Counted from the whole stretch's first letter, positions 2,682 to 15,326 are shown. The stretch: 54,414 nucleotides of DNA, filler included, from Bipalium vagum (GCA_037834085.1; 3 parts of 3 records of this genome joined end to end with filler, not necessarily neighbours in it); one strand, 5' to 3'. Notes: a model not told the origin generated them from the letters alone. Made by a program: numbers and translations.

Positions 2682-3661
2682 TTAATCCATTAAATTAGGT
2701 CTATCATTCCCTGGAAATCCATGGGAGAAGAAATCCTTTAGCTGACTACGAATCCACTGATGCACTGATTTTTTGAGCTCTACGCCAGAATCGAATTTTT
2801 TTCCTTCTAGTTTCTCATTGAGGGGTCCAAATAGATGTAAATCACAAGGGGCGAGGTCGGCAGAATAAGTAGAATGTGGCAAACAGTCAGTTTTCAGTTC
2901 TATAATTTCATTCACTGTAGCCTGGGAAGTATGTGATCGTGTATTATCGTGCTGCAACAGGACACCACGACTAAGCAGTCCATGTCGATTTGTTTTAGTT
3001 TTAGATGATTTTGAATTAGATGACAATACAATGCACCTGTTACAGTAGATCCTTTTGATATGTAATGCTAAAGAATTGGGCCTTTTTTATCCAGAAAGAG
3101 ATTAGGCATCAGTTCACTTCTTTGGAGGTGAAGAAGAAGAATGTCTCCATTGTTTACTTTCTCTTTTTGACTCGGGTTAGAAATAATGAACCCAACATTC
3201 TTCACCATATGACGATGCTATCTAGAAAATCATCAACTTTTGTTTCATAACGATGCAGGAGCATTTGATAGATCTCCATCCGGCGGACTTTCATGTTGTA
3301 GGTAAGTTCGTCTTGGAACTTGTTTTCACATAAGATGTGATCAATTTCGGAAATTTTCTCTATTGTTTCAGTTGAATCTGATCTCCCAGATCGGGATTCA
3401 TCGCTCAGATTTGTTAATCTGCTTTGGAATTTCCTGTCATTTATATACCTGCTGAAGTGATAATCATGCATCCCCATACTTTGATAACATTCAGCAATGA
3501 ATATTAACAGGAATTTCGCCATAACTGCCTAAAAATCGAATTATTATTATCTCCTCTTTAATTCATTAAGGTAGAGATATCGCCATCATCATTTTAATGC
3601 GAATATTAATCATGGATATGCGTTTTTAGTAATTTAAGGTTACTTTTTGACTGACATCGTA
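2682..3661 (-). mobile_element. mariner (DD34D) transposon, frameshifted and internally deleted
   Basis: ORFs 3202-3522 (LSDESRSGR, FLDSIV) and 2682-3026 (LLQHDNTRSH...HSTYSADLAPCDLHLFGPL, 34 residues between the last two Asp). Terminus TA-CGATGTCAGTCAAAAAGTAACC at 3661; a related terminus occurs at about 28864. Confidence 0.92.
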
Positions 3662-4662: not shown

Positions 4663-6380
4663 ATTTATTCGCTCCAAGGAAGATGAGAGGTCTCCCAGGC
4701 CATTACGATAAGCAGTGAGAGAAAGCCGGCCCATTTCCTGATGAAGTTCAGGCGCTGAATATTTAATAAAAATATCATTAAAGAAAAATAAAAGAATAAA
4801 ATTCGCTCGAAATCGATTAATTATAAAGAAGCACGATCCACTTTTAAAAATATTTTTTGTATTTAAATAATTTAAAAATAGTTAAATTTTTTATTTTTTG
4901 CATTATAAAGTTGATATTTTTTATTTATTCTAATTTTATATAGACAGTCGTGGCCATAATTCATCGGCCACCATGTCATTTATTTACTATTATTCCTGTG
5001 GACCCTGGTTTCTTCTTCCGAATAAAACCGTTAATGCAACTGTCTATAAAACGATTCTAGAAGAAAAACGTTAAACTGTTTCTTGCAATTAAAAATTGTG
5101 ATTATTTCAAAGGTGATGGAGTGCCAATGCCACCAGGTACGCATCAAAAAATTCAAAAACGTCTTGTACACGTTTTCAAATTAAATCTTTTGTAACCAAA
5201 TGTATTTTTTAAACCATTGTGGTGATGAATTATGGCGGCGACTGTTTTTTTAAAAAATAAATAGCCAAAGCCTTCAGCATGATCATTTCGTCACATGTTA
5301 ATAGTATCAAATAATTTAATAATAATTTTTTAAAGAATAAATTTATAAAAATGTGTTGGTTTAAAAATATTAAATAAATATAATTAATAATTAATTATAA
5401 TATATTAAATAAACGGATTTTCGATTTTCTATTGAATTTTCCCGAAAACTTGTATTCAATTTTGTATCATTTTCACCGCTTATATATTTGGAATATTTTT
5501 TACGAAACATTTGTAGGCAGAGATTTATCTTTTCGAGAGTATCAAAGAGACCTGTCATTTTGACATTAAATTAAAATGTGTAAGATTTATTTTTTGTTGT
5601 TGTTGATTTACATGATCTCAATTCTCAATTTCAATAAGAGGTTTCATTTGGAATTATTAATTTTTCTCAATAATAAATAATATCAATCAATTATTTGATA
5701 TATTGTATTACAGCTCTCACAAATTCCGAGCAATGAAAATTATCAAAAAATAAAAAATGATAAATGATAATATTATTTTATTATTTTTATAATAAAAGTA
5801 TGTTGACAATTTTTTTATTTTCTTTTTTCCAAAATATTTAATCAAAACGAATTTTTAATAAATATAAAATAAAAATTGATTTAAATCATATTTCTGTAAA
5901 TCCAAAGAAAAACTTAATTATTAATACCTGTTTTTTATTCATTAAAACAAAGATTATTTTTCTCTTAAAAGAGAAATATTTTGTTAACGAAAAATATAAT
6001 AATATTTTATTTATAAAGCAAATTTGACGTACATAAGGTTCAGAAATTAAATAAAAAAGCAAGAGTACCATGGATATAATCAACCAAGATGGGTTTATGA
6101 TAAATTTCATTCATCTGAATAATTGATTTGGTTCAGTCTACATAAAAGTAACCAAATATCCAGTAGCAGGGAAGTTCCAGATCTTCACCGATTGCACAAT
6201 ATTTGATATTGTACAAGACTTTAAGAATCCACTTGATTTCCTTTTTGGAATTCCAATATTGATTAGAATGTCTATTATATCGAATAGACATTGACCCAAG
6301 AGATCAAATAATCAACGTCTTCAGTTGAATATTATAATCCGATTTGGCCAGTTTTATTTTTTTCTTCAAGTCCGAATACT
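4663..6380 (-). CDS. putative multi-exon gene(s) of unknown product; model uncertain
   Basis: Open exon-like blocks bounded by AG/GT: about 6378-6010 (YSDLKKKIKLAKSDYNIQLKT / HSNQYWNSKKEIKWILKVLYNIKYC..., open only if 45- and 27-nt in-frame introns are assumed), 5551-5415 (LFDTLEKINLCLQMFRKKYSK...) and about 4755-4665. No homology recognised. Confidence 0.25.
4945..5244 (+). mobile_element. internally deleted Tc1-like element (MITE-sized)
   Basis: TIRs CAGTCGTGGCCATAATTCATC and rc CAGTCGCCGCCATAATTCATC; internal remnants NKTVNATVYKTILEEK and FKGDGVP (cf. FQQDNAP). Confidence 0.8.
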
Positions 6381-6852
6381 TTAAGATATTTTTATTATCA
6401 ATTATATCAAAGTTTCATAAAGAGTCAATTGGAAATTTTAAATCAATCAATTTTATTTAGAGGTTTCATTTGGAATTATTAATTTTTCTCAATAACGAAT
6501 TATATAAATCAATTATTTGATATATTGTATTACAGGTCTCACAAATTCCGAGCAATGAAAATTATCAAAAATTAAAAAATGATAAATGATAATATTATTT
6601 TTTTATTTTATAATAAAAGTATTTTGATAGAATTTTTTTATTACCCCTAAACATTTATTATTTTCTTTTTTCCAAAATATTTAATCAAAACGAATTTTTA
6701 ATAAATATAAAATTAAAAAGTGATTTAAATCATATTTCTGTGAATTCCAATTAAATTATTGAGAAAGAATTAATTATTAATGGCTGTTTTTTATTCATTC
6801 AAACAAAGATTATTTATCTCTAAAAAGAGAAATATTTAGTGTTAACGAAAAA
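5637..6852. repeat. direct duplication: 5637-5994 and 6459-6852 flanking a unique ~460-bp segment
   Basis: Both copies start AGAGGTTTCATTTGGAATTATTAATTTTTCTCAATAA, share CTCACAAATTCCGAGCAATGAAAATTATC, and end GTTAACGAAAAA. Confidence 0.93.
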
Positions 6853-7179
6853 AAAAACATTATTATTTTAAAGAAATCCTATTTGATTTTTTAAATTATT
6901 TTAATGCAAAATATTCATGTATTAAATATATGAAAGTACTTCTGATGAACTTTTAGTTTTTTCTTATAATCCCTGGACAAAAGAAGAAGAATGACAGAAA
7001 GTACTGAAGAAATTGTTGAAAAATCGAATTTTCCAATATTCAATGAGATTTATTTTGTTTAAATTTCAACCTATCATTCCGAAATTTGGAGAATAAGTAC
7101 AGTAAGCCACAATCCGAAACGATTTATCATCAGCACATTTTCGAAATCTTTTAGATGATAATCAGAGAATACATTGCAT

Positions 7180-7640: not shown

Positions 7641-8164
7641 CAAGGCATTCAATAATTACTACTTGGTTTCAATATATTATCTTTATTATTTGACTTTCTA
7701 AATTATTAATTATAATTGTAACCAATGCTATCATATTGAGGTTTACTATATATTTTATTCTATGGTTTTCTATTAATAGTAATCTCGTTTCCTTCTTATA
7801 TAATTTTAATTTTAACCCTGTGTAATTTGTTTCAAAATATTATCTATCATTAATCATCAAATATGGCTGTTTCATTATTATTAGGTCGACACATAAGTAA
7901 TGTCGTTTTTAATGAAAAATTTTAAATAACAAAAGAAGTCACCCAACAGATATATTAACTAAATACATAAGCACCATTGTTTTCTACGATGTCACTCGAT
8001 TTAGAAACTTATTTTATAAGGTCATCTTTATAAAAATCCTGTGGTTTGGAATCGAAGAAGTCTTGGATGGCTATATTTATAGCTTCATGGAAATCGTTTT
8101 TTACCAAAAAATGTTGCGTTGCACGGAAAATATGGTAATCAAAAGGCGAGATGTTAGGAATGCT

Positions 8165-9515
8165 TTAGTATTAGCTATTAATTCTTTTTCATATCCGGGA
8201 ATCCTAGGATAGTCGCTTTAGTTAATTCCTCCTTCATCTCGCAAAATCCTCTCTCACATCTTTCAGACCATACCAATTTTATGTTATTACTTCCACACAA
8301 TTCCTCCAAGGCCCTCGATTTCTTTGAATAATTGTTTATGAATCTTCTATAATAGTTACATATTCTAAGGAAACTCCTTAAATTCTTGACACATTTTAGC
8401 TATTCGGAATTTTTAATAGCCTCGTTGGATCTGTTCGAATCCCTTTTTTGTCTATTATATTCCCCAGGAACTTTAATTCGTTCCGTAATAAGTTGCACTT
8501 TTCTGGATTCACTCGCAATCCTAACTGTTGAATACGGTTTAAAACTCGTCCCAAGCTCTCAAAGTTGATCTAAGCCTTCTGAATTCGTCAGTTATTTTCT
8601 TCGACTTTCTTTTCTTCCTGTAATCGATAACCAAACTGTCGTTGCATATCTATTCATCATACAAGATCAGGGTTCATGTCTTCCACTACTGTAAATCGTA
8701 TGAAATTCCTACTCTTCGAAATTTCTACATCTACTAGAATCTTTCCTACACCGATCATTTTGCTGTTTTTCGCGCATTTCAACACATCTTCGCAACCAAG
8801 AAGTTCTATATTATTTAATCTTCTAAATATATATTGACTCATCACATTTATCTGCTCCTGTGTCTAATAAGCATTCAAAGCACTTTCCTTTAATTTCAAC
8901 CTCAGCACAAGGTCTACCTTGTATAATGTCATACTTAATCTTCACTTCACCGGTCTCTTCTATGGCCATTATTCTGTTATCATTATTCTCATCATTCATA
9001 TCTTTATTACAACTATCTTTGCAATCTTTCTTTATGAAAGCATATACCTTTCTATCAACTTTCTCTTCATCTTTTATAATATTGATAAAACTACTTCTAT
9101 TATAAATATAAATATTGCGATTTGAACTGGCATCTAGTTTAGATCTCCAGTCAATTCCACTTCGGATAGAGCTTGCTCTTTTAGGTCTCCTCTCTGTAAC
9201 TGTTCGTTTCTTTATTAAAATAGTTAATCTTCTCTCCTTGCTACATAGTCTCCTTCTTCTACAATTGCATTTACGTTGTTTGCTCATTCACATCCATTAT
9301 CCTCCTATCCTTCTACCAACGTTTGAAAAACTGTTGTTCCCATCATATTTGCTGCTCACATTCTTCTTCGGTTAAAAAATAGATTGTCTGTAACTCTGCT
9401 GTCTCAAATTTGTGTAGCATTCCTCTGTACGGTGTCCATTCATATCACATCTCCTATATCTTATCCTGTCACACTGACTTCTCAGGTTCTGATCAGATCC
9501 ACATGAGAAACACGA
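8165..9515 (-). mobile_element. Ty3/Gypsy LTR retrotransposon internal fragment (gag zinc knuckles, aspartic protease, RT C-terminus, RNase H linker)
   Basis: CFSCGSDQNLRSQC and RRCDMNGHRTEEC knuckles; LLDTGAD protease; after a deletion GLRVNPEKC...LRSFLRICNYYRRFINNYSKKSRALEELC...LTKATILGFPDMKKELI. No LTRs remain. Confidence 0.9.
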
Positions 9516-9667
9516 TATCATGGTGAAGAATTACTCTATTTCAATTGGTCAAAGCTGACCACTTCTTTTCAAGTTTTTTTTTACCTGGTTGCAACAGCTC
9601 ATAATGAATAACACCCCTAGCAGACCACCAAAAAATTTAATAATACCGTTTGTTAGTGAAAATTAAT

Positions 9668-9739
9668 CGGAGATACTGGGATTCGAACCCGGGACCTTTA
9701 CATGCGCATGCACTGCTCTGACCGCCGAGCTACATCCCC
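9668..9739 (-). promoter_or_regulatory. tRNA-Ala-derived Pol III internal promoter (A and B box) inside the TRIM LTR
   Basis: GGGGATGTAGCTCGGCGGTCAGAGCAGTGCATGCGCATGTAAAGGTCCCGGGTTCGAATCCCAGTATCTCCG: tRNA-Ala-like 5' end, A box TAGCTCGGCGG, B box GGTTCGAATCC, acceptor stem pairs, anticodon arm non-canonical. Confidence 0.85.
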
Positions 9740-9764
9740 CGACTAACTTTCAATTTATCTCACA

Positions 9765-9776
9765 CCCCCCTCCTTT
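9765..9776 (-). other. polypurine tract of the TRIM
   Basis: AAAGGAGGGGGG immediately 5' of the TG start of the 3' LTR. Confidence 0.9.
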
Positions 9777-9878
9777 AAAGCTCACTTCCATACCCTTAAC
9801 CGCCCCGAGTCTGTTTTACTTCAATTTCTAATCCATTCCTTTACATTTATACTTCCGAGACCTCGTCCGCTGATTGGT

Positions 9879-9896
9879 GTCCTGGTGTGGTCGCCA
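9879..9896 (-). other. primer-binding site of the TRIM (probably tRNA-Arg)
   Basis: TGGCGACCACACCAGGAC abutting the LTR end ...CTGACA. It is complementary to a tRNA 3' end GTCCTGGTGTGGTCG-CCA, similar to tRNA-Arg(UCG) ends (identity inferred). Confidence 0.85.
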
Positions 9897-9934
9897 TGTC
9901 AGTAAAAATTAATCGGAGATATTGGGATTCGAAC

Positions 9935-10789
9935 GAACAAAATTGTATTTTTACAACAAGTCTTTACAAATAATTAAAAATAAATCAATTGCACATTTCT
10001 GTGAGCCTAGTATGGCATTTTTACAAAAGAAAAAATAAAAGATAAAGTTTATCACATAATTCAGTTTTGTTAATTATAGATTAATTCTTCATCACAATCA
10101 GTCAGATTTTGTCCGTCATCATTGTCGTCTGTCTGACTTTGTGGTTCACCATTGGCAATATCGTCCAGTTCAGTTTGAGTCATCTTCAGCTTTCCGACAT
10201 TCCGATGAAAATTCCACTGCGTTGCGCGCCACTTGATATTTGAAGATACGCAGAATTTTCCGATTTCCGTTGATTTACGTTTTGAGAACTGCAGCTTTTT
10301 GAGAATTTCGTCATTCCGCGTTTCCCATGATCCGAGGCATTCAACGGTAAATGTGTCCAGCATTATTGTCCATTGCGGCAGATCTTCATAATGCCTGAGA
10401 TTTTTCTCATGATTCCAAAACATGTTGTTTTCGGTGTCATAAGGGTATTTGACGTCTATGAGAAGAAGACGTTTTTGATTTGTGAATTCGATTTGAAAAT
10501 CCACTCGTTGTGTAGAGTTGATATATTGACTCTCTGCGTTGACAAACACTTTTGCCGTTGTGTTTGATTTGATCTGATCTGCGAGATAGTCTTGAATCGT
10601 GTTGTGATGAATGTTCTGAAATATTTTCGACTGATCCTAGCCGACGAGAACATGCGATAGAGTTTCCTCTGGTTCATCACATCTTCGGCATCCTCTGAAT
10701 GGTGATACCAAGCAGAAATGGATATTTCGCCATTGAATATGTCTTGTGGAGATGAATGATTGACAAATTGAAGACGCGAAGCGACCAGC
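9935..10789 (-). mobile_element. 5'-truncated RLE non-LTR retrotransposon (NeSL/R2-type) inserted in the TRIM 5' LTR
   Basis: One frame 10789-10070 with a single TAG: WRNIH...CRRCDEPEETLSHVLVG*...HHNTIQ (CCHC knuckle and RHN motif), then RVD...LLIDVKYPYD...KNLRHYEDL...CLGSWETRNDEILKKL (PD-(D/E)xK endonuclease). 135-bp 3' UTR ending TTTTGTTC. Confidence 0.92.
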
Positions 10790-11523
10790 ACTTTCAATTT
10801 ATCTCACACCGTTTTCCCATGGTTTTAGGGTAACCGTATGTCTTTGTCCAGATGAAAGCCACTGCCTTTTACAACTGGAGTTATCGTATATAACCCATTT
10901 CTCGTCACCAGTTATGATACGATTCAGAAAATCTTCATCTTTTTGTTTAGAAATCAACGTGTTGCAAATTGAATAACGCTTCTTTTTTGGTCTTCGGTAA
11001 GTTCTTGAGGCGCTCATATTCTTTACCGAACCTCTTTAAACTTCGACGAATTGTTTCCAGATTGAATCCTAATTTTGAATTCATTTCAAAGAGTGTTTGA
11101 CATGGATTATCTTCGATAGATACCTTAACAACTCCTGTATCCACAGTAGTTGGCTTCCCTGATCTTAAAACGTCTTCAAAATTACCATTCAAAAATTGGG
11201 AAATCATCTGTGACATTTTCTGATAGAAAGAGTATCGGTATAGATGTTGTTGATTGACCTAGTAGCCTTCGCTGCCGTTTTATCATGTCGAAACCCATAT
11301 AGTATACAATAGCGTATATGATTTTCATTTGGTATTTCCTCTGCCATTTCTACAGATTTAATGAATATAATCAAATTATTCAAAAAATATTAAAACATTA
11401 AAATTCGTAAATTTACCCCCAAAAATATTAATTTGATATATTTAAACAAATTACTTATTGATTGAATATTAATTATTAAAAAACGACATTACTTATTTGT
11501 CGAACTAATAATATAATCATTCG

Positions 11524-11745
11524 TATTGGATTGTTCGGAAAATCACTTTTTATACCTATCTTTAAATCTTAATTTAAAGCATCCAAGTCATTTTAAAGGT
11601 TTGGATATTCAAATTGCCTGGTAGATGGCAGATCATCTTAGAACAAACAGGACAATACATCATTAATTTAAATATTTATTATTAATAAAACTTTGGTCTT
11701 ACGTTTTACTAAAAAATGTGAAGTGACCTTCCAAATAATCCAATA
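11524..11745 (+). mobile_element. mariner-derived MITE / deletion derivative
   Basis: TIRs TATTGGATTGTTCGGAAAATCACT and rc TATTGGATTATTTGGAAGGTCACT; internal LPGRWQIILEQTGQYII, a mariner C-terminus. Confidence 0.85.
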
Positions 11746-14400: not shown

Positions 14401-14559
14401 TCATTATTTTTTCTTTATTTAGTTATTAAAGATTCATTTTAAAAAGTCTAAAAACGTATTAGCCAATCTGATATTTTGGTTGAAAAAAGGAAAAACATTT
14501 TAGTAAAGTATTACAAAAATATTCTATAAATAAAAGGACTCTGAGATTCTTAATTAAAA

Positions 14560-14565
14560 TAATAA

Positions 14566-14596
<31 letters not shown>

Positions 14597-14601
14597 AATA
14601 A
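14560..14601. repeat. (AAT)n microsatellite
   Basis: Direct reading. Confidence 0.9.
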
Positions 14602-14621
14602 TTTATAATGATAATATTTAG

Positions 14622-15326
14622 ATTTTTTGTTTAGACAAGACCTGCTGCTTTGGTGATATTGAATTACTTCTTAATATGCCAACGTCTGCTTTTACTACCA
14701 CTGCTGCGAGCCACTGTGTCCTTCTTGTTTTGCAGGCTCAGAATTTTGATCGACTTCTGGTTAGAAAAAATCCTTCCAGCATTTTACTGATGCTAGAATC
14801 ATCTTATCAACGTCTTGATCTTTGGTGTAACAGACTTGGATATGTTGTACCTTTGTTACATATTCTCAAAGAACAGGCGAATCGTGCATTGAAAAATTTG
14901 AAGGGTGACAAAAATGCCTTAACTCTTACACAAGTCATGCAACAAACGGATGAAAATAAATACCAATATTTTACCCCACCGAGAGGTGCGATAATTGACA
15001 TATTTGGACCTAAGACGGTATTCTATTATATACGGAACCAGTATCACCTCCGAAAACAACACATGAAGACCAATCTCGATCAAAGAAGTCGTAAAAAGAT
15101 TTTTTCAAATCACGAAAGTTGGATCTCGGAAAATAGGAGAAAATTAAAACAACTTCCAGATAAAATTAATAAGCCTAATGACATAAACCTGAAACCCTAT
15201 GATCTGCAACCATTGGATGACTGTTATACGAAGCTATTAGAGGATCGGATAGCCGAATTTCTAAAAATTCCCAATTCCACCCGACCAACCTTTGTTGAAC
15301 CCCTTTCCAACAAATCGGTAAGCTGA
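14622..15326 (+). CDS. large exon of a cyclic-nucleotide-binding (cNMP) domain protein
   Basis: After the TTTAG acceptor (14621) a 234-codon open frame starts IFCLDKTCCFGDIELLLNMPTSAFTTTAASHCVLLVLQAQNFDRLL, matching the FGE...A.V.A...C.LL.L...F..LL cNMP pattern. Possible GTAAGC donor near 15318. Upstream exons not resolved. Confidence 0.7.
   Translation: MFCLDKTCCFGDIELLLNMPTSAFTTTAASHCVLLVLQAQNFDRLLVRKNPSSILLMLESSYQRLDLWCNRLGYVVPLLHILKEQANRALKNLKGDKNALTLTQVMQQTDENKYQYFTPPRGAIIDIFGPKTVFYYIRNQYHLRKQHMKTNLDQRSRKKIFSNHESWISENRRKLKQLPDKINKPNDINLKPYDLQPLDDCYTKLLEDRIAEFLKIPNSTRPTFVEPLSNKSVS

Follow-up and report, generated by a model that had tools for sequence, protein, structure and literature searches.

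We analysed a stretch of 54,414 nucleotides from Bipalium vagum (GCA_037834085.1), three parts of three records of this genome joined end to end with filler and hereafter called the window, in which a retrotransposon that lacks long terminal repeats (non-LTR type) and encodes a restriction-like endonuclease (RLE) is inserted in the 5′ LTR of a terminal-repeat retrotransposon in miniature (TRIM). The TRIM is in turn nested, together with other elements, inside a mariner-like DNA transposon (7876-11513), and all features of this locus lie on the minus strand. The host transposon is bounded by terminal inverted repeats at 7876-7910 and 11479-11513, which form inverted repeat I21 (35 nt, 94% complementary), and its N-terminal open reading frame (ORF; 11204-11383) matches the Pfam domain HTH_48 of the Mos1 transposase (E 1.7e-9). 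The transposase frame runs on across the TRIM when the TRIM and one copy of its target-site duplication (TSD) are excised.

A miniature retrotransposon with tRNA-like LTRs

The TRIM measures 360 bp, with 114-nt LTRs and a 132-nt internal region, and is framed by identical 5-nt TSDs, AACGG, upstream at 10809-10813 and downstream at 9646-9650. Its 3′ LTR (9651-9764; 114 nt, TG...CA), read from the sequence and aligned to the 5′ LTR, is intact and represents the empty target site. Directly 5′ of it lies a polypurine tract (PPT), AAAGGAGGGGGG (9765-9776), a similar tract occupying the same place at locus L068, which carries the near-full copy of the inserted element described below. The primer-binding site (PBS), TGGCGACCACACCAGGAC (9879-9896), adjoins the end of the 5′ LTR. 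Within the 3′ LTR, positions 9668-9739 form a tRNA-Ala-like module with an A box, a perfect B box and a degenerate anticodon arm. The module is recognised by the Rfam tRNA model at 37.5 bits (gathering score 29, E 6e-6) and by ARAGORN as a tRNA of undetermined type with no anticodon assigned, and reading of its sequence reveals a G3:U70-type acceptor stem, CGC at the anticodon position and the perfect B box GGTTCGAATCC. From this reading and general knowledge, we take it to be a degenerate derivative of tRNA-Ala.

The 5′ LTR is split by an insert of 855 nt (9935-10789). LTR bases 1-19 remain on its upstream side (10790-10808), beginning TGTGAG and matching bases 1-19 of the intact 3′ LTR at 100%, and bases 77-114 remain on its downstream side (9897-9934), comprising the rest of the B box and T-arm, the tail and the CA end, and forming direct repeat D7 with 9651-9688 (92%). 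Bases 20-76, including the A box, are missing, which amounts to a 57-bp target deletion. The insert runs in the direction of the tRNA-like module, and its 3′ junction, ...TTTTGTTC|GTTCGAATCCC, splits the B box behind the first G of GGTTCGAATCC; its exact place is ambiguous by 4 nt because the element ends with GTTC and the target resumes with GTTC. An earlier note made from this DNA sequence alone had described a co-oriented NeSL/R2-type element in the TRIM 5′ LTR, and our coordinates and junctions reproduce both its insert length and its deletion. That note placed the junction directly upstream of the B box, whereas we locate it within the box, and it held that the insertion separates the A and B boxes: the LTR is indeed interrupted, but the window copy has lost its A box outright, so that separation of the two boxes does not describe it.

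Contigs from public sequencing runs were compared with positions 9400-11600. A 203-nt contig of run X1, possibly the source sample, matches 10679-10881 with 0 mismatches and spans both the 5′ junction and the junction between LTR and mariner. Run X2 is labelled as another organism; one of its contigs (336 nt, 9905-10240) reaches across the 3′ junction and covers 30 nt of the LTR, an overlap one letter below the bridging criterion. The stretch was found in no RNA run among the public runs checked. An assembly chimera was rejected as the source of the arrangement, since the junction is present on hundreds of contigs and the X1 contig matches the 5′ junction of the window exactly.

TRIMs with tRNA-like LTRs have been named Helenus (TRIMp3) and are described from fungi, several animal phyla and one plant (Kojima 2024, PMC10886601). 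The window TRIM resembles these elements in having two short tRNA-derived LTRs with conserved A and B boxes, a PBS, a PPT, a TSD, no ORF and a miniature size of ~360 bp (PMC10886601), and on these sequence features we assign it to the published Helenus class. It differs in its TSD, which is 5 bp long here and 4 bp in animal Helenus, the fungal and plant members having 5 bp (PMC10886601). TSDs of 5 bp also surround two other TRIMs with occupied 5′ LTRs, namely L028 (AATAT/AATAT) and L068 (AACTA/AATTA). Elements that target Helenus LTRs are unmentioned in the paper that defines the class (PMC10886601).

Insertion at a single position across the genome

All 28 genomic loci in which a match reaches the 3′ end of the element join ...ACAATTTTGTTC to GTTCGAATCC..., that is, to LTR base 77 onward. 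The LTR tail after the junction ends in CTAACA, beyond which the flanks of the 28 loci differ: six run into a PBS and are therefore 5′ LTRs, and the rest run into unique sequence as 3′ or solo LTRs. Genome-wide, the terminal 16-mer of the element occurs 194 times compared with 23 times for its reversed control, and 141 of the 194 occurrences are followed by the strict target pattern (the junction 26-mer), compared with 0 for the reversed control, a recurrence far above what chance would give. Among 20 sites failing the strict pattern, 19 proved to be LTRs carrying point mutations, the other being a chance match. In all, 47 of the 48 flanks read in individual loci join the element end ...TTTTGTTC to LTR base 77. 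Junctions were also listed with a pattern that printed 18 nt past the junction; each of the 100 listed joins the element end to LTR base 77 and carries an LTR-type acceptor stretch, and 99 continue into an LTR tail, the remaining LTR being truncated shortly past that stretch.

A second LTR subfamily, with the acceptor-like stretch GGTGTCTCC and the tail AATTTATTTGAACCTAACA (e.g. G000:C560:8238-8272), accounts for 24 of the 100 junctions listed. It comprises ~180 empty and at least 24 occupied sites, and is entered by the same element at the same base; the two subfamilies have only the tRNA-like part in common and differ in their tails. For the main subfamily, 268 occupied and 1,402 empty sites were counted at up to 3 mismatches, the empty-site pattern being 37 nt long and the reversed control of the occupied pattern giving 0. 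The TRIM PBS begins TGGCGACC..., and the LTR-PBS junction has 514 genomic matches at up to 2 mismatches, such that ~30% of the ~1,700 LTRs are 5′ LTRs. Occupied LTRs lead into a PBS in 11 of 47 cases, which indicates no obvious position bias relative to that ~30%; 5′, 3′ and solo LTRs are all occupied, and the element always runs in the direction of the tRNA-like module.

The 5′ ends of the insertions, unlike the 3′ ends, are variable. At least 15 distinct 5′ junctions were recovered, with a different element start in every copy and with the LTR part ending at base 17, 19, 34, 58, 62, 65, 70, 72, 73 or 75. Insert lengths are ~600, 713, 722, 855, ~1,020, 1,315 and 1,424-1,460 nt, and reach up to 4,980 nt, with target deletions of 1-60 bp across the occupied LTRs. 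Even truncated copies with a unique 3′ flank are directly preceded by the 5′ half of the LTR, and the LTR halves are therefore target rather than element sequence. A fixed 3′ junction combined with variable 5′ truncation and small target deletions shows many independent events of target-primed reverse transcription (TPRT), and is the classical signature of this process. Genome-wide, the counts bear out the claim of the earlier note that a site-specific RLE element inserts at the tRNA-like T-arm and B box with precise 3′ and variable 5′ junctions. The three outcomes that the note had named as refuting it were checked, and each spoke for it: the tabulated 3′ flanks are LTR sequence, they have LTR-specific tails rather than being genuine tRNA genes, and the 5′ junctions are not those of one shared insertion.

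Two further observations concern the target site. At L030 (702-793), an LTR neighbouring an occupied one lacks bases 58-78 and contains no element; an insertion that was aborted or later lost could have left this gap, as could ordinary decay. At the 3′ junctions of L073, L075, L076, L078, L081, L084, L086, L089 and L090, the target base next to the element end can be G, A, T or C, the following TTCGAATCC being conserved; this variation may reflect untemplated addition at the initiation of TPRT or subfamily-specific ends.

Identity of the inserted element

The window insert, recognised by its similarity to other genomic copies, is a dead, 5′-truncated copy that can be read as 240 codons in one frame with a single stop. 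Its translation contains the remnant of a CCHC zinc knuckle (10637-10690; CX2CX8HX4 followed by TAG), in which the stop replaces the fourth Cys that is still found in copy L068. The knuckle is followed by a 159-aa ORF (10070-10549) that contains a PD-(D/E)xK restriction-like endonuclease domain (VDF...IDVK) and an acidic C-terminal tail, and is 57% identical to the C-terminal ORF of L068. A 3′ untranslated region (UTR) of 135 nt (9935-10069), without poly(A), completes the copy and ends ...ACAATTTTGTTC, its terminal 16-mer being the one that recurs genome-wide.

Dozens of genomic copies match the insert over its full length at 75-95% identity. Overall, copies are 70-95% identical to it, so that the family comprises several subfamilies and has a long history, and longer copies extend the element to ~5 kb. 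The near-full copy at L068 (2362-7341; 4,980 nt) also lies in a TRIM 5′ LTR, with PBS, PPT and 3′ LTR downstream. Pieces of the reverse transcriptase (RT) domain of the element match Pfam RVT_1 in two copies (E 8.7e-6, below the gathering score, the ORFs being fragments), and the best matches of the RT among solved structures are R2 proteins (E 1.9e-12, compared with ~3e-3 for L1 ORF2p; phmmer against PDB). The C-terminal ORF of L068 aligns over 170 residues with positions 950-1118 of the R2 protein 9nl2_A, which form its RLE domain (E 1.1e-5); in a Pfam scan of the element ORFs, no model matched the RLE domain. Upstream of the RT, a Ulp1/Peptidase_C48 domain is weakly supported (21.8 bits in L034 against a gathering score of 20.7, 18.8 bits in L068), the match being confined to the Cys-box region GYDCG, and it is preceded by a Cys-rich ORF without a Pfam match. 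The predicted order is thus an N-terminal Cys-rich region, a Ulp1-like protease, RT, the CCHC knuckle and the PD-(D/E)xK nuclease. No Pfam endonuclease/exonuclease/phosphatase match, as would be given by an apurinic/apyrimidinic endonuclease (APE), was obtained for the N-terminal ORF pieces of two long, degraded copies, and no credible R2-like 5′ ribozyme of the hepatitis delta virus (HDV) type or other Rfam family was found in one near-full, degraded copy. Weak snoRNA-like matches of an Rfam scan to the window insert were dismissed as noise.

As judged from its encoded domains, the element is an RLE-type (R2-like) non-LTR retrotransposon with NeSL/Utopia-like architecture. NeSL and Utopia can also be defined by their targets, a spliced-leader or a U2 gene; since the target of this element is a TRIM LTR, it is not a NeSL/Utopia element in that strict sense.

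A protein search of the genome returned 2,761 first-look candidates, mostly containing stops. One family member (G000:C203645:4-759, minus strand) lies in a stop-free frame of 1,223 aa at a contig edge, with 60% amino acid identity to the query, and may be intact or nearly so. Several copies (on G000:C126248, C119153, C10476, C214219 and C243759) are longer than the window insert by ~50-66 nt at its position 85 and match it as two blocks, 1-85 and 84-855; this indel, which precedes the CCHC knuckle in the coding region, distinguishes subfamilies.

Weighing the target of the element

Based on these results, we propose with a probability of about 0.85 that this site-specific RLE element has as its genomic target a single place in the B box/T-arm of the tRNA-Ala-derived modules that Helenus-type TRIM LTRs carry. 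Several points weigh against this proposal or the wider view built upon it. Binding and cleavage of the LTR DNA by the element protein are inferred by analogy, and transcription of the LTR by RNA polymerase III (pol III) is assumed from conservation of the boxes. The placement of the element in a clade follows from domain architecture and weak Pfam scores. Insertions into real tRNA genes at a rate below ~3% would be compatible with the data, as tRNA genes with the GGTTCGAATCC core were not enumerated. The occupied proportion of ~16% of LTRs, or about one in six, is approximate, as diverged sites, whether empty or occupied, escape the pattern counts. Finally, most copies including that in the window are degraded and the 1,223-aa frame is the only long open frame seen, which makes current activity of the element hypothetical.

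Three other explanations would account for parts of the same evidence. The evolved target could be a family of genuine tRNA genes with an Ala-type T-arm, for which the TRIM LTRs act as vastly more numerous decoy copies. Precedent exists among related RLE elements, which insert in genes for tRNA-Pro (NeSL-1_TV), tRNA-Arg (planarian LIN15_SM) and tRNA-Glu (LIN25_SM) (Kojima & Jurka 2015, PMC4640811), and the two occupied LTR subfamilies are alike only in their tRNA-like part, so that recognition probably lies within this module. However, a distinct tRNA gene was found at none of the 100 junctions listed and at none of the 48 flanks read in loci, a pattern search of the genome detected no junction at the canonical tRNA-Ala T-loop GTTCGATCC, and the sole canonical tRNA-Ala-type 3′ end seen differs from the LTR in its T-loop. 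Moreover, ~2,000 LTR sites suffice for the element to persist without tRNA genes, and we regard a tRNA-gene target as unlikely.

The association could instead have been inherited from one or a few ancestral LTR insertions that were later copied when TRIMs retrotransposed, LTRs recombined or segments were duplicated. TRIMs do amplify, and in two pairs of loci (L073/L080 and L081/L089) shared flanks show that both members are clear duplicates of a single locus. Against this stand the at least 15 different 5′ junctions, each at its own position in the element and its own LTR base, with inserts of ~600-4,980 nt, which largely refute an origin in a single insertion; one 3′ junction is also common to both LTR subfamilies and to several subfamilies of the element (70-95% identical), and it is unlikely that an LTR with a multi-kilobase insert was faithfully copied into hundreds of differently truncated versions. 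We therefore consider shared descent very improbable. A last explanation would make the 38 nt past the junction, that is, the T-arm and the tail ending in CTAACA, the 3′ end of the element itself, a tail shared in the manner of long and short interspersed elements (LINE/SINE), with random insertion. The mostly unique sequence that follows CTAACA would, on its own, be compatible with an element terminus, but LTR bases 1 to ~75 stand upstream of variously truncated copies, which cannot carry that half, and these flanking 5′ halves refute the idea. About one quarter of the copies also lead into the TRIM PBS, 5-bp TSDs surround whole TRIMs with an occupied 5′ LTR, and two different tails follow one and the same junction, leaving this explanation with a negligible probability.

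Proposed mechanism and significance

If the LTR module is the target, insertion can be modelled by analogy with R2. The element protein would bind the tRNA-like DNA and its RLE would nick the bottom strand at LTR base 76/77, after which the RT would copy the element RNA, starting from the structured, poly(A)-less 3′ UTR and primed at the nick. An imprecise second-strand step would then yield the 5′ truncations and target deletions. Each insertion would split or remove the A/B-box pair of the LTR concerned, and loss of its pol III promoter is plausible. The multicopy, self-amplifying TRIM could thereby serve as a harmless landing pad, and may act as a self-renewing safe harbour or as a decoy; a hyperparasite in active co-evolution with the TRIM is a further way in which the system might be read.

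More tentatively, and with less than even confidence, we suggest that the RLE lineage lives as an obligate parasite on Helenus TRIMs, that its recognition is directed at the tRNA-mimic LTR and at no cellular tRNA gene, that the new sites supplied by TRIM amplification sustain it, and that it inactivates about one sixth of the LTRs by splitting their A and B boxes. If true, this would constitute a three-tier food chain of transposable elements (TEs), from an autonomous LTR element through the TRIM to the RLE element, with antagonism between TEs. The X2 contigs with the same junction hint that the relationship is conserved across species.

R2-type site-specific RLE retrotransposons are models for TPRT and are now being engineered for targeted gene insertion. 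Each new natural target specificity provides a further protein-DNA recognition pair, and the present one should interest transposon specialists as well as those who mine R2-like enzymes for other specificities. The target described here is unusual in being a dispersed, mobile and self-renewing tRNA mimic as opposed to a host gene array. The system raises the questions of how a site-specific element survives without host-maintained targets, whether it tells a tRNA-like TE apart from real tRNA genes with the same B box, and whether insertion of one TE into another limits the spread of TRIMs of the pol III type. Annotation is affected as well: Helenus LTRs raise the number of predicted tRNA genes, and composites such as the one in the window confuse the labelling of repeats.

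Comparison with known systems

The element resembles NeSL and Utopia in its order of RT, CCHC knuckle and PD-(D/E)xK nuclease, with a Cys-rich region and a Ulp1-like protease upstream of the RT, as well as in its strict insertion at a single position of a multicopy small-RNA-type sequence without poly(A). Such an order of domains, including the Cys-rich region and the Ulp1-like cysteine protease, has been reported for nematode NeSL and for Utopia-1_TSP (PMC4640811). The likeness concerns architecture, and the target differs, being an SL1, U2 or tRNA gene in those elements and a tRNA-derived LTR module here. LIN15_SM sits further 5′ in its tRNA-Arg gene (PMC4640811, supplement S6), in contrast to the B box/T-arm position of our element. 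The earlier note gave tRNA-Arg as the target of YURE, but YURE is a Ciona family that prefers a U2-derived satellite, and tRNA-Arg is the target of LIN15_SM (PMC4640811).

Among solved structures, R2 proteins match both the RT and the RLE of the element best, and the two elements have in common a precise 3′ junction, 5′ truncation to variable extents and small deletions of the target. The fraction of the multicopy target that is occupied, ~16% here, is also comparable. However, R2 targets 28S rDNA, a tandem array homogenised by the host, whereas the target units of the present element are dispersed and mobile; the Ulp1-like protease is additional here, and no HDV-like 5′ ribozyme was detected in the one near-full copy, which is degraded.

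Targeting of one TE by another has a parallel in Tx1L, which according to its citation in Cosby et al. 2019 (PMC6719617) inserts into the Tx1D transposon of Xenopus. As cited there, Tx1L is likewise a sequence-specific non-LTR element with its target inside another multicopy TE (PMC6719617); it is of the APE type (L1/Tx1 clade) and its host is a DNA transposon, unlike the RLE type and the non-autonomous host with tRNA-like LTRs observed here. The present finding joins two known themes, the tRNA-type targets of NeSL-like elements and the targeting of TEs within TEs. Full-text literature searches, with Repbase outside their scope, returned no RLE family on a TRIM or Helenus LTR, in agreement with the earlier statement that none has been described, to which these precedents in tRNA genes and in TEs must be added. 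As far as we have found, no earlier description exists of an RLE retrotransposon whose specialised target is the tRNA-mimic LTR of a Helenus TRIM and which occupies about one such LTR in six.

Other features of the window

Just downstream of the TRIM, the same mariner contains an LTR-less fragment of an LTR retrotransposon (8190-9525, minus strand), comprising a gag CCHC ORF (9372-9521), an aspartyl protease (8823-9287; Pfam RVP, 22.3 bits) and a C-terminal piece of an RT (8396-8554); it might be related to the autonomous partner of the TRIM. A second mariner-like transposase remnant at 2682-3522 (minus strand) shows DDE-region-like motifs in translation, with no Pfam match at E<=0.01. On the plus strand, a 216-aa ORF at 14676-15326, without a Pfam match, may be a gene fragment or due to chance. 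Two copies of an AT-rich unit of ~390 nt, at 5625-6011 and 6447-6869, lie 822-858 nt apart and are 73-97% identical by block, the blocks corresponding to repeat families D1-D4, D6 and D12. Microsatellites close to both ends of the piece examined, at 1-72, (ATT)n, and 14546-14602, (AAT)n, are the source of most of the long inverted repeats reported.

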